The notes under the pieces are model-generated. The model did no database searches. It was not told the DNA's origin and worked only from the letters and a program-made list of their open reading frames with translations. A program made the translations under genes and the position numbers. 64,000 bases of DNA, from the NCBI GenBank assembly GCA_023334545.1, contig JAADVB010000006.1:1-64000 (forward strand). Reading direction: 5' to 3'. This DNA is from Salisapilia sapeloensis CBS 127946 (taxonomy: Eukaryota; Protista; Oomycota). Below, piece after piece: positions 27,025 to 32,452 of this stretch; position 1 is the stretch's first letter, and every line of letters begins with the position of its first letter.

Positions 27025-27556
27025 TTCGTCTCTACAGTACCGAATACAAGCTTCTTGGTTGTCAATCGCCTCGTACGTTTCGATCCTCTATATTTATAGA
27101 ATCCATTTCCCATCATAGCAAATGCATGCATCCAAATAAGATACGCCACATAAGATTTCCAGTCATCTTGACACTCGATTCGATCTCGAGATAGCACGGG
27201 AGCAAGAGAAAGCTTCTCTACTACCAGAAAAAGAAAAATATTCTTTTCTTTCGTTAAAGTTGTGTCTTGCTCAACCCACCGCACGTCATCCTAATGGACC
27301 TAATAATCTGAGTCTCCATACAATTGTCAAGAGAGTGGAAATCCAGTTGTTTGAGCTCAAAGCGAGAAGGACAAGAAGCCTCCGAGCACGCGACGTCCGT
27401 GCGACACAGTTTGATTTGCGGTACACGCTCGTCACGTCCTTTATTGCGACCAACATATCGCGTGATTAAGTAGTGAGCGACTTTCGATTCGTTCTGCACC
27501 ACAAGCTTTTCGTATTCAAATCTCGTTGCATCGTACGATTTGCCAAGTAGAAGCAT
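27021..27556 (-). CDS. Uncharacterised coding segment, either a separate small gene or N-terminal exons of the LRR gene
   Basis: Two protein-like frames (MLLLGKSYDATRFEYEKL... and DDVRWVEQ...DDWKSYVAYLIWMHAF...). A 74-nt GTACGA..GCGTAG intron (27076-27003) would fuse them in frame to the LRR gene. Confidence 0.4.
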
Positions 27557-27608
27557 GGCCAAGTCTTCGCTTCCTCCTTGCAATGAACTCGACCCACTTG
27601 ACGTCAGT

Positions 27609-30416
27609 ATGGACGACTTGGAAGGGGACAATTTGCTGCGTGGTATGTTGATTTTGTAGGAATGTGGATGGTAGTAGAGGTTCTTATTTATACTCAATGC
27701 GTCTATCGTAGACTTTGTCTTAAAGCAGGAATATAATGGCGCTACGGACACACCGTCTAGTACCCATAACGGCGGGTATACGTCGGAAGAATCGGATTAT
27801 TCGGCCACGACGCCGCCACAAAGACCACAGACTGATCCGGACATTGCCCTCTTCCAGCTTACGGACACAAATGAACTAGTGGAGACCGTCGCGGATTACG
27901 TTGCGGATCAAGACTTGACCCAGATACCTGCTTCTGAGAAAAATGGCTTTACTGGAAAGGTTATCAAGGGTAAGACATCCAAGTACCGTGGCGTTACGCA
28001 GACGAGTAAGTCGTCTTGGGGTGCGAAATACAGCGCTAAGCGTATCACGAACAAGTGCAAGACAGCAGATGAAGCTGCACACGCGTACGATGACTACGTG
28101 AAGACTCATTTTCCTGAAAAGTACCCGAAATTTGCCAATTTCTGCGACCACTGTGGGAAGTTCACGAACCCTCTGGAGCTGCCACAATACGCAAATGAGT
28201 GTACGTGCTCTGGAGTGAATCCGACGTCTGCTGAAAGCACGAGCGACAGTCGATCGAGTTCGTCTTCTCCTATGGCAGAGACCGCGGACAATGACGACAA
28301 GCTCATGCGTCAAGGCAGTGCTTCGTCTCTTAATTCGCTTAAACTGAGCTTCACAGAGTTAAACGACGCGCTGTTCGATGGTAGCTTTGAAGATCTGGCG
28401 AAGGAAGCAGTGGACGCGAGTGATGACTTCAAGATGGAGCAGAATCCCAAGCGCCGTAAGAGCAGCGTCGATAGTGCATCGATGGCGGAGATCTCTGCCG
28501 TCGCGGAGTTTGCTAAAGGGAAGGACATCGACAACATTATCAACGACATCCATCGCTCGAGCTCGAATTCACTATCGAAGCACCCTTCGTTCCGTCGATT
28601 TAATAGTGGTAGTAGTAAGAATATGCTCGCGTCGTCTACGATGGACAGTTCTACGTTTGATTTGAATCCAGACGAGATGGAGGATTTGCAGGACATCAAT
28701 ACGTATCTGAACGATCCAGCAGAAGATTACGCTTTGAGTGTCGGCAGTGCTCCAGAGCCTCAAGAGCAGCAAAATGGCAAGTACCAAGGATTCGGTAAGA
28801 TGCACAGTCTTGACTATGAAGATTCGACGGTCGAAGGCGAGAGCACAAGTGTCGTGGGAATGTCGGAAGGGAGTAGACAAGAGTCTCTTCCGGCACAAGT
28901 CGACTTCAAGACTAGTTTCTTACAAAAGTACTGGCGAAATGATCGGAAGAACATCCAATGCTTTCCTTATTGTCGGGAATTCGGCGACTACTATCGTGTG
29001 CAGATGGAAAAGCTGGCACATCAGAACAAAGGTGTCTGTCGTGCTGACGTAGACGTTCGTATCGACATTTCGTCTGGGTCGGTCCTATCTCCATCGACAC
29101 TTGTCTTCTTAGCTCGATGCAACAGTGTCTTTTCGCGTGAGAAAGCGTTGTCACATGAGATGCAGTTAAGTCACGATGAGATGGACGGATTAAAAAAGGT
29201 GAGTACGACAGGTATCATCGAGTCTTCTGCTCCTATCCCATCTGCAGGTGCGAATACGATGCAATTTGATGTGAAATTCGCACCAGACGTCTGGAAATTC
29301 GAGTTTGATTTGCCCAAGAAGCGTCGACATACACAAGCCGGATCAGAAGATGGTGATCAGTTGCATGCCGAGTTCCTCTACTTTTTCGAAGTCGATGTCT
29401 TTTATTCGGATGATAAGGAGACGTACGTGAGGCTCGGACATCGTGAATCGAGCAAGTTCCAGATCGCGAATACACGGACGTTGCAGCGACAACGCACCAA
29501 GATGGGCGAATCGGCTGCGGATAGGAGCGCTCCGAACGCCATGGACCATCCAGACAAGCAAATTGTTAAGGCCCCGCGCTATCAACACGCGAATGACAGT
29601 CTTCTCTCGAGAGACGACAGCATGACGGAAGTAGCGGACTCGGAGACAGTCAAGACTGCGGATAAGACGCCACCTCCGGAGCTCTTGTCCCAATCGACGT
29701 CGACGCATCTTGATAGATGGGTCAGTGCCGTGGACGATGATGCTGTTCATGGAGACTATGGTGGCTACAGCACGCCTCGGAAGCAGAGCACGAAAGCGAC
29801 GGACGGGATATCGTCCAGTGGCGTGCCGAACGTCACTACGCATGAAAAGGCGGAGGCTGCTCCTGTCCATCCGACGGATGCAGAGAAGAACACTTCGGAC
29901 GAAGCGTATAGTCTGCCCAAGTTGGCGTCGTATACGCTCTTGTGTCTGCCTCTGTCGGTTGTCTACTTGGTCTGCGGTCTTGGCATGCTACTTGGCTTTG
30001 TGCTTGTGCCGCCAATGGCTCATGCTATTGTCCGTGGACTCGACACGCTCTCAGACATGGAGCTCAGTCGTGCGAATAGCAGTCTCATTGCCTCCGACGC
30101 GCGCTACGTTTTAAATCGATTGGCGACGGAACCACCGACGAATGAGCGTCGTGTCTTCCGGTATCACACGTCTGGAGAAGTTTGGGCACGCCTGGGATTC
30201 TTTACCGGCGGCAAGTTGCTCTCTTCCGTGCTTTCTTTCTTCCCTACGATGTTGCTAGGCCTCTGTGCCGTCCTGGTCTTCCCACTGCGTTCTCTATCGA
30301 GCTCTATATCGTCCAAAGCATGTGACACAGCGCTGTGGACGCGTGAGTACTCTCGCCGACAAGTGGGCAAGCCTCGTGCGTCATCGCCGCGGCCATCATC
30401 TGCAGCGTTGGTGTAA
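27609..30416 (+). CDS. AP2-domain DNA-binding protein with a central globular domain and a C-terminal multi-pass membrane module
   Basis: Spliced start MDDLEGDNLLR|DFVLKQ (intron 27643-27711). AP2 motif SKYRGVTQ..WGAKY..ADEAAHAYD followed by CDHC..CTC. Hydrophobic segments YTLLCLPLSVVYLVCGLGMLLGFVLV and LLSSVLSFFPTMLLGLCAVLVFPL. Confidence 0.85.
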
Positions 30417-30706
30417 AGACGTATGGCAAGATGACGGTCGCAGTCGTCTGTAACTTATCGTAGCTTTGGATGCATCTCTTTCTTTTTATCATTTCATCTA
30501 GCAAGTTTGTATCATGACTAGTAGACGCATGCAGTATACTAGTACTCGTCTACTATGTGATGCAGGAGTAGCTTTGGGTAGATCAACATGGAAAACATTT
30601 AAAGAAAAGAGAGTTGAGAGTGGATGATGAATGATAACATGTCGACCAGACGTGTAGGTCGGGAGGCAAATTTGTGTATTTCTTGTCGACTAGGAAGCAG
30701 CGACGT

Positions 30707-32452
30707 TTACTCGGTTCGGAACTCTTCCCCGCCAGACGCCATGTCGAACTGACTAGCGAAGTCATCGATGGACATGTCCTTCTTGTTCCCGCCATCATCG
30801 TCATCGTCGTCAAACACCCACGTCGTGCCAGGAACGTACTTGGATGCCTCCCCGTCGCTCGATCCTGGAGGTGGCTTCGTACCTTTTGCGTACAATGGTC
30901 CGGCGCTAGTTTCACAGCAAGATAAGGACGCTACATGGCTTATTCAGGATACAAGAGACGCACCCTGGTAGCGCATCTGCAGCACCGGAAGTCATAGAGC
31001 TCTCGCCAATGTCTTCCAGTCTCGCGAGAAGACTGTCAGCCAACAACTTGGTCGTGCCAGCTTTCTTGAAAAAATTGTGCTTGAGCAGTGGTCCCGTCGC
31101 CGGACTGCATCATCTTGATTGAGTTACGTCACGAGTGAGAGAGGAAGAGCAGACGTACCGCTTGGAAGGTTCCTTCTGGAGGCACATCTTGACCATGTCA
31201 CGGTAGTGTCGACCGAACTGGCTGTTGCTACCATCATCCTACACATCCAAAGGTTATCATTTACGTCTCTCGTAGCTGAAAGAGGCAGACTTACGCCGTA
31301 GGTCTTGAGCGACGGTGGCTCTTCCTGTAGCGTTAGCAGCAAGACTTTCATCGGCTGGAAACGAGCGTACGGAGCGTATCCTTTCGCGAGCTCAAGCGCC
31401 GTGATGCCAAGCGACCAAATGTCTGCCTTGTAGTCGTATCCACGCACTTGTTCCATGACCTCTGGAGCCATCCAGCACGGCGTACCGACAAATGTCTGGC
31501 GGTTCTTACGCCGGTCACCTCCTTCCATCATCCATCCAGAGACACCAAAGTCGGCGATAACAACGTGGCCTTCAGAGTCCAGCAGGATGTTACCAGCCTT
31601 AATGTCTCTGTGGTGAGCATGTTAGGTACTGGGCATGGAAAGGAGATGTAGGATGGACGTACCGATGGATTTGGCCGTTCTCGTGGAAGTATTGCAGCCC
31701 CTTGAGTGCTTCGTTCAAGATGACAGCAATGTACTCTTCCTACAAGCATATCCAAGCTTGTTAGATACTCGATAGACGGTGGTTTGGATGATAGAGAGCG
31801 AACCTTGAGGCCTTCACCTTGATTCCTCTTCTTGAGCAAGTTCATGACGTGGAGGCAGGATCCTACGTATAGAGATGGGAGACTGATGGCTAGATGAAGA
31901 GGTAGAGAACGAACCTTTGTTCATGAGTTGCATGACGAGCCACAACTGGTCTTTGTTGACAAAGCTATCCGAGTGTCAGAGCTTATTTATAAGCGTTTAG
32001 AAGAGAGACAAAGGTACCTGCAGTAGCACTTGAGGACGTTCGGATGGTCTGTCATCTTCATCGTCTGCACTTCCGAGCGGATGTCTTCAAAGCTCGTGGT
32101 GATCTTTTCCAAGTCCATGATTTTGATCGCGACATATTTGTCTTTGGACGCACAGTATGCTTTCCAGACTTTTGCAAACGCTCCCTACAAGACACATAAG
32201 TCGTTATTCATGTCCATGCTATGGTAGGAGATGTGGTAGATGTAGTGATGCTCTAGCAACGAGAGCTAGGCAAAAGGCTGTTATCAGATAGTGGTAGGGA
32301 GATAAATCTTTTGCCCGAGCTATTGGATCGATCGCATCTCTTGCTGCCTCTCATTCCACTCGTACGTTCCACTATAGAGTAAAAGAATATACCTGGCCAA
32401 TTTGCTCAATGATCTGGTACTCTGCGGCAGTCGTCGGCCACTCTTCTGCCAT
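30707..32452 (-). CDS. STE20/GCK-family kinase, OSR1/SPAK/Fray-like; multi-exon
   Basis: [110 protein letters not shown], tail GTTWVFD. Confidence 0.92.

Follow-up and report, generated by a model that had tools for sequence, protein, structure and literature searches.

A candidate membrane-tethered transcription factor with an AP2-type fold, conserved across oomycetes

Can a single oomycete protein join a DNA-binding-type domain to a membrane anchor, and what would such a protein do? The question arises around positions 27609-30416 of a 64,000-nucleotide (nt) stretch of DNA from Salisapilia sapeloensis CBS 127946 (GenBank assembly GCA_023334545.1, contig JAADVB010000006.1, positions 1 to 64,000 of the forward strand). 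We refer to this whole stretch as the window and give all positions in its coordinates. An earlier note, made from the letters of the sequence, had seen here a candidate membrane-tethered AP2 transcription factor. We find the DNA-binding-type domain and the membrane anchor in one polypeptide, a single RNA contig that spans both, and orthologs that keep them together. Judged by these features, the family is a conserved yet undescribed candidate membrane-tethered transcription factor. We tentatively read it as an oomycete-wide membrane-anchored nuclear regulator, that is, a latent transcription factor tethered to a membrane and released by proteolysis, and consider this possible rather than probable.

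The gene lies on the plus strand and is spliced once. Translated straight, the interval 27609-30416 contains three stops because a 69-nt intron interrupts it (Table); the plus-strand frame is open from 27678 to the stop codon, and the predicted product of the spliced gene has 930 amino acids. Orthologs begin with an acidic motif of consensus PLP.CDEYDPLDAHLDELEEPG..FLQDF, and in the window this motif begins at the ATG at 27555 and resumes past the 69-nt interval. There is an in-frame stop at 27474, upstream of this ATG, and no other ATG within 27361-27554; therefore, translation starts at 27555. RNA contigs were available from four public runs, which all belong to a single study with no more than three samples and each hold about 15 Mb of contigs. 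Each run holds one contig of 3100-3172 nt that is 100% identical to the window and covers 27450 to 30601-30611, and the contigs extend 59-89 nt further upstream of 27450. Their sole joint, found in all four runs, skips the same 69 nt with GT..AG ends. The messenger RNA (mRNA) drawn from these contigs runs from about 27361 to 30611, with a 5' untranslated region of at least 194 nt and a 3' untranslated region of about 190 nt. Since the spliced contig represents RNA, the AP2-like part, the central domain and the hydrophobic C-terminus share one mRNA and, after the splice, one reading frame, which bears out the claim that all the listed parts belong to one polypeptide.

Other readings of the locus were set aside. 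The interval given earlier keeps its gene and its stop codon, but its start and its unspliced translation do not hold: a start at ATG 27609 is ruled out by the three stops inside the intron. An intron ending at CAG 27728 would break the frame, whereas one ending at TAG 27711 agrees with the reading frame, with the homology and with the RNA. The single spanning contigs also rule out, for the assembled RNA, a membrane region that is spliced out or transcribed separately; no form without that region occurs among the assembled contigs of the four runs, an assembly product from which rare variants drop out.

The gene belongs to a family of wide range within one lineage. A word-indexed protein search returned 51 homologs, all from oomycetes and from both major classes of the group, including Pythium, Globisporangium, Lagenidium, many Phytophthora, downy mildews, Albugo, Aphanomyces, Saprolegnia, Achlya and Thraustotheca. 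The highest identity to the window protein is about 41-42% by BLASTP and 44-45% in the family alignment (A1); at so low a best identity, the source lineage's own protein is evidently not in the searched collection. None of the 51 homologs carries a precomputed Pfam domain, and their source names read only 'hypothetical' or 'transmembrane protein'. The full-length window protein, scanned against Pfam and NCBIfam, likewise gives nothing usable, its single row being a chance match to TelK_N (E 1.7). Alignment A1 shows the same order of parts from Saprolegniales to downy mildews: four conserved blocks that have variable acidic linkers, rich in Ser and Gln, between them, with a mean column identity of 79% in the AP2-like block, 67% in the central block, 56% in the C-terminal block and 45% overall. 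Retained as they are in 51 oomycete homologs, the features listed for the locus are, on the evidence of conservation, not due to chance.

Charge varies along the protein. The N-terminus is acidic (net charge -17) and is followed by a basic block comprising the AP2-like part and a four-Cys motif (+7). Next comes a first linker that is acidic and Ser-rich, as described earlier, with a net charge of -21. A second linker, also present as claimed, follows the central domain; it is disordered, as is the first, has a net charge of -10 and opens with a conserved, nearly invariant basic P-x-K-K motif. The disordered linker before the membrane spans measures about 130-200 residues, and many Arg and Lys residues make the C-terminal tail basic. 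No hydrophobic segment lies at the N-terminus, the hydrophobic stretches being C-terminal only, which rules out a signal peptide or an N-terminal anchor. The first linker (28212-28886) also contains short motifs conserved among orthologs, with consensus SNLSVGSLKFSFSED, DNLDQIIKDI.RSSS and KKIHSLDFD; these look like docking or phosphorylation sites.

Is the N-terminal block an AP2 domain? Its sequence follows the pattern YRGV..W.A..EAAxAYD..NF. In the alignment of the block, R15, G16, V17, W25, A44, A45, Y48 and D49 are invariant or nearly so, and the YRG, W and EAAxAYD elements are retained across all oomycete orthologs. In PDB sequences, a profile built from the block finds WRI1 (E 0.027), TEM1 (E 0.06) and ERF096 (E 0.97) among its top rows, with the YRGV, W and EEAAxAYD elements in register with WRI1 and TEM1. 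The Pfam AP2 model (PF00847, gathering threshold 33.3 bits) matches 17 of 18 orthologs below threshold, with a best E of 0.024 and a match over profile positions 1-49 of 54; the scan of the full-length window protein gives no AP2 row. An AlphaFold2 (AF2) model of the block, made with no templates, has a predicted local distance difference test score (pLDDT) of 77 and places strands at 17-19, 25-27 and 34-38 and a helix at 41-55, forming a three-stranded antiparallel sheet packed on the C-terminal helix. Searched with Foldseek, this model returns AP2 domains in all of rows 1-7, with E-values that are weak because the domain is small. The structural comparison with VIA-align is sharper: among 48,161 chains just three reach Z>=5, all of them AP2/ERF, and the following row stands at Z 3.6. 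These three are AtERF1 (2gcc; Z 5.8, root-mean-square deviation (rmsd) 2.0 Å, 56 of 63 residues, 27% identity), WRI1 (Z 5.3) and TEM1 (Z 5.1), the last two as chains 7wq5 and 7et4. Lower rows include the arm-binding domains of the lambda and Tn916 integrases and a Plasmodium AP2, all of which share the AP2-type fold. By its model, the fold is thus AP2-type, a divergent member that falls below the thresholds of the domain models.

The likeness to the plant AP2/ERF proteins AtERF1, WRI1 and TEM1 extends over 51-61 residues at an rmsd of 2.0-2.9 Å and 27-33% identity. The YRG element, the EAAxAYD helix, the strand-1 Arg and the strand-2 Trp of the plant domains are all present. By contrast, the region of strands 2-3 is shortened, the strand-3 Trp is absent, the Pfam score is sub-threshold, and a four-Cys motif and a membrane module, neither seen in those plant proteins, are fused to the fold. 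The four-Cys motif, C-x2-C-x15-C-x-C, is the adjacent CxxC..CxC of the earlier reading: all four Cys are invariant in 18 sequences, Zn_Ribbon_1 weakly matches the region (E 0.077), and the motif presumably binds metal. AP2 domains as such are familiar in oomycetes. A survey of stramenopiles (PMC4117751) covered them in P. infestans and P. sojae among others, an oomycete histone deacetylase combines a PHD domain with two AP2 domains (PMC5112689), and P. infestans has a small AP2 family of two members that were assayed on protein-binding microarrays (PMC11267843). The deacetylase and the P. infestans AP2 proteins resemble the present family in setting AP2 domains into nuclear proteins of oomycetes, as we suppose here, but they are soluble and were found by standard models, whereas the present family has a membrane module and no precomputed Pfam domain in 51 members.

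The second folded part is the central domain, which corresponds to the globular domain of about 190 residues in the earlier reading. It comprises 207 conserved residues, carries invariant Cys and His residues and is mostly beta in its AF2 model (pLDDT 75.8, predicted template modelling score 0.73). The sequence L-P-K-K-R-R, invariant in 20 sequences, lies just before a loop with pLDDT <50, and its KKRR could be a nuclear localisation signal or a DNA contact. We found no sequence relatives of the domain in Pfam, NCBIfam or the PDB, the last searched with a profile as well, and Pfam scans of all orthologs' central domains gave scattered single-member chance rows only. Structure searches give more. 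The best Foldseek row is the DNA-binding domain of CP2c/LSF (E 1.3e-3), with further rows for the velvet protein VosA, NFAT, p53/p63/p73, STAT and grainyhead (TM-scores 0.26-0.40). In VIA-align, the longest overlaps are with sandwiches of transcription factors: VosA (123 residues, Z 6.4), VeA (119, Z 6.2), NFAT (131-137, Z 5.5-6.1), the DNA-binding domain of MYRF (131, Z 5.9), STAT (119-128), NF-kB p50 (128) and TonEBP. A structure search of the Atlas yields an oomycete cluster (TM 0.72) and, after it, grainyhead/CP2 (0.45; grainyhead, velvet and LAG1 up to 0.47), velvet (0.41-0.46) and LAG1 (0.43). The Atlas feature search leads with clusters of PF28397, DG1062_N (0.90, 183-184 of 256 features), followed by LAG1, NDT80 and P53, at a recognition below the reliable level. 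Partly independent methods therefore agree, none of them decisively, and their model-based results point to a place for the central domain in the extended immunoglobulin (Ig)-fold class of many transcription factors. The PF28397 clusters that lie near the domain in language-model features come from haptophytes and oomycetes; the Pfam scan of the central domains holds no PF28397 row, in a scanned copy that may lack the model.

The central domain also occurs outside the family. A profile search of short proteins found three soluble relatives (P0057, P0058 and P0059; 248-328 amino acids, E 2e-17 to 5e-7) that share the signature RNDRKNIQCFP and are without the AP2 and membrane parts; two of the three end in short basic tails. 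They come from eukaryote data (Logan SRR27504756 and JGI 3300050046). Because the central domain occurs alone in small soluble proteins, it is a module in its own right, which suggests a wider, unnamed domain family. It thereby defines a conserved module, marked by this signature, that is present also in small soluble proteins of other eukaryotes.

Neither fold needs to bind DNA. They might instead mediate contacts with proteins or RNA as parts of a membrane protein that has another role, for example a scaffold of an organelle or of the envelope, and the basic motifs would then not be nuclear signals. The sub-threshold AP2 match and the lack of one Trp that contacts DNA in plant AP2 domains agree with this, as do the generic character of Ig-like sandwiches, among whose top rows Integrator, adhesion and carbohydrate-binding proteins also stand, and the public records, which say only 'transmembrane protein'. 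We nevertheless regard it as unlikely. The AP2 region is the best-conserved part of the protein (79%) and basic, oomycetes throughout have preserved its YRG, W and EAAxAYD elements, and only AP2/ERF chains reach Z>=5 in the PDB; for the central domain, several independent searches favour Ig folds of the transcription-factor type.

The third part is the C-terminal membrane module. A Kyte-Doolittle scan with a 19-residue window finds hydrophobic regions at residues ~766-806 and 865-895 and no others in the protein, and in every full-length ortholog the hydrophobic stretches are C-terminal only. The two hydrophobic clusters separated by a polar loop that the earlier note described are thus present, as stretches of about 41 and about 31 residues around a loop of about 58. 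In the alignment of the module (A4), columns D46, D50, L53, A56, N57, L69, G154 and V169, the last residue of the protein, are invariant, and R95, Y98, F99 and K103 are conserved at the entry to stretch 2 (R..YF...K). The invariant polar residues, which lie beside and within the hydrophobic stretches and cluster in the polar part just after stretch 1, and the invariant last Val suggest that the module does more than passively hold the protein in place. A profile of the module found no relatives among PDB sequences. One Phytophthora nicotianae protein (P0043, 826 amino acids), named 'Glycoside hydrolase family 17 protein' at its source, carries the module at 653-826 (E 3.7e-73); the gene model has probably been fused or given the wrong name.

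The module had been likened to the 'putative sensor' membrane domain of actinobacterial histidine kinases, PF13796. As stated, this likeness is not borne out by our searches: PF13796 (gathering threshold 28.2 bits) gives no match to the window's module at E<=10, and the Pfam and NCBIfam scans find no kinase domain in the window protein. Four orthologs show collinear sub-threshold matches, the best at 14.2 bits: P0049 (E 0.044, profile 17-123 of 162), P0052 (E 0.078, profile 7-139), P0050 and P0051. An hmmsearch of the A4 profile against 1.84 billion representative proteins retrieved, at E<=0.001, 14 members of this eukaryotic family and nothing else, neither bacterial proteins in general nor actinobacterial sensors in particular. 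With sub-threshold matches and a search that recovers only the family itself, homology to the bacterial domain is unproven. A bacterial origin of the module is unsupported by this full-library HMMER search, and it is unlikely that homology to PF13796 could be demonstrated from sequence alone. In Atlas features, the module (29907-30413) lies near clusters of oomycete 'transmembrane proteins' of 228-318 amino acids, some of which have PF13796 in 10% of their members; similar membrane modules may be spread over a larger group of oomycete proteins.

These results bear on the idea that the protein is a eukaryotic one-component sensor, whose module, homologous to bacterial PF13796, perceives a signal and controls the release of the transcription factor. 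PF13796 is the commonest Pfam family among matches to the orthologs' modules, with collinear matches in P0049-P0052, it recurs in the Atlas neighbours of the module, and the long hydrophobic stretches with central Pro or Gly are compatible with an arrangement of two plus two helices. All matches, however, lie far under the threshold, the family profile found no bacterial protein, and hydrophobic segments often yield weak spurious matches. Moreover, PF13796 itself is not known to have a sensing function, its name being a prediction. We consider this idea very improbable.

How would a protein built of these parts work? In the reading that we tentatively favour, the first ~760 residues would face the cytosol or nucleoplasm, with the C-terminal module holding the protein in the endoplasmic reticulum (ER) or the nuclear envelope. 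DNA would be bound by the AP2 fold and probably by the Ig-like domain too, and the acidic N-terminus would serve as an activation region. A change would be sensed at or in the membrane module, upon which the N-terminal part would be cut free by intramembrane cleavage or proteasomal processing and enter the nucleus through its basic motifs.

The layout of the protein agrees with that of membrane-tethered transcription factors as a class, and proteolytic release is plausible. SREBP, a latent factor that is released proteolytically, resembles the proposed arrangement in its cytosol-facing N-terminal factor part, its two membrane segments with a loop between them, its cytosolic C-terminal tail and the helix-destabilising residues of its first hydrophobic stretch. 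Stretch 1 of the window protein is rich in Pro and Gly; in SREBP and ATF6 such residues favour intramembrane cleavage, and a hairpin turn would explain them equally well. The two proteins differ in that an AP2 fold and an Ig-like domain stand here in place of bHLH-Zip, and a tail of about 35 residues in place of a large regulatory domain; Site-1 and Site-2 motifs are not established here, and there is no sequence relationship. MYRF, with its NDT80-type domain, and Mga2/Spt23, with their IPT domains, share with the present family an Ig-fold domain upstream of a C-terminal membrane anchor. The DNA-binding domain of MYRF aligns as 5h5p (Z 5.9 over 131 residues) and 5yhu (Z 5.2-5.3), values in the generic range. 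Unlike these proteins, the present family shows neither an ICA autoprocessing domain nor ankyrin repeats in the Pfam scan, has an added AP2 fold, and carries two hydrophobic stretches rather than one helix. The plant NTL (NAC) factors and bZIP28/ATF6 are alike in having an N-terminal DNA-binding part, a C-terminal anchor and no signal peptide, but they belong to unrelated DNA-binding families and use a single helix. Tethered plant factors are freed by proteolysis or by alternative splicing (PMC9237531), whereas among our contigs there is no form without the membrane region. Having no bHLH-Zip, bZIP, NAC, ICA or ankyrin parts, the protein stands outside all of these families.

Several observations weigh against a released transcription factor. 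The isolated AP2 block of the window scores only 10.4 bits (E 0.88) against the 33.3 bits of the Pfam threshold, and nothing in the alignment corresponds to the strand-3 Trp ('RVWLG') of plant AP2 domains. The N-terminal AP2 motif of the earlier note thus stands at the level of the fold, where the three chains at Z>=5 are all AP2/ERF, but not by the measure of the Pfam model. For the central domain, VIA-align reaches a maximum Z of 6.8, in the generic Ig-like range; generic Ig-like and carbohydrate-binding modules score alike, and the top rows include Integrator subunits and adhesion molecules. Both hydrophobic stretches exceed the length of a single span and have Gly or Pro near the middle, so that two spans or helical hairpins are possible and the topology is ambiguous. 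The Pfam and NCBIfam scans recognised neither a protease site nor an autoprocessing domain.

The same observations can be read another way. The protein could remain uncleaved in the inner nuclear membrane, as fission-yeast Bqt4 or Heh1/Heh2/LEM2/MAN1 do, and tether or silence chromatin at the envelope; the full-length protein would reach that membrane by its basic motifs and long disordered linker and bind DNA there. Such proteins are alike by layout only, in the succession of one or more DNA-binding folds, basic motifs, a disordered linker of about 130-200 residues and C-terminal spans. This layout matches the requirements for inner-membrane targeting of Heh2. The family scans recognised neither a protease site nor a processing domain, and the contigs contain one full-length form of the transcript only; both points also agree with an uncleaved tether. 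The Pfam scan, on the other hand, finds none of the LEM/HEH, APSES or MSC domains of those proteins, the acidic N-terminal motif would be more like an activation region, and the strongly conserved module with its invariant polar residues points to more than anchoring. An uncleaved tether is therefore somewhat unlikely in our judgement, though it deserves consideration.

A stronger version of the released transcription factor would make the module a true membrane-embedded sensor, derived from PF13796 or not, that gates the release of a factor with two DNA-binding domains, one AP2 and one Rel/NDT80-like. It would read lipid composition, temperature-dependent rigidity or ER stress. This version we hold to be quite improbable; if it were true, oomycetes would possess a one-protein pathway from membrane to promoter of their own, invented independently of SREBP, ATF6, MYRF and Mga2.

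The literature agrees with the earlier statement that no system of this kind has been described in oomycetes. We found no paper on the family, none containing its locus tags or an oomycete's own membrane-tethered factor, and nothing relevant under the name 'DG1062'; where papers on tethered factors bring in Phytophthora, they concern, by their titles and abstracts, the plant host. Oomycetes include major pathogens of crops and fish, and their transcription control is poorly mapped, with censuses that rest on standard domain models. The present family escapes such models, there being no Pfam domain in its 51 members, though it is conserved from Saprolegnia to Phytophthora. If it does encode a tethered factor, it would link the state of a membrane directly to gene expression, a link that searchable papers do not describe for this lineage, and would set an AP2 fold in a membrane-anchored context.

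Table. Positions of the gene parts, predicted domains and conserved motifs in the window
Feature	Positions	Strand	Basis or remarks
Exon 1	27555..27642	+	Start codon and acidic motif LPPC.ELDPLD...DDLE; aligns with ortholog N-termini
Intron, 69 nt, GTATGT..TAG	27643..27711	+	Homology and reading frame; skipped in contigs from 4 of 4 runs
Exon 2	27712..30416	+	Stop codon 30414-30416; open frame, contig-covered without a further joint
AP2-fold domain	27969..28142	+	Three strands and a helix in the model; YRGV, W-G-A and EAAxAYD elements
C-x2-C-x15-C-x-C, putative zinc knuckle or ribbon	28143..28208	+	Directly after the AP2 fold
Central Ig-like beta-sandwich (predicted)	28887..29507	+	Invariant YWRNDRKNIQCFP.C, KGVCRA, LARC, PDVWKF and TRTL.RQ
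Invariant KKRR	29316..29327	+	Low-confidence surface loop of the central domain
Hydrophobic stretch 1, ~41 residues	29919..30041	+	Gly/Pro in mid-stretch, PP near the end; Kyte-Doolittle maximum 2.51
Polar loop, ~58 residues	30042..30215	+	Invariant D...D..L..AN and L.R motifs
Hydrophobic stretch 2, ~31 residues	30216..30308	+	Conserved Lys, central Pro; Kyte-Doolittle maximum 2.21
Basic C-terminal tail	30309..30413	+	Ends in an invariant Val

One further observation concerns the surroundings of the gene. The mRNA ends, at about 30601-30611, near or inside opposite-strand open reading frames (30583-30925) that lead into a neighbouring kinase gene, and the two genes are perhaps tail-to-tail neighbours separated by hardly any spacer.

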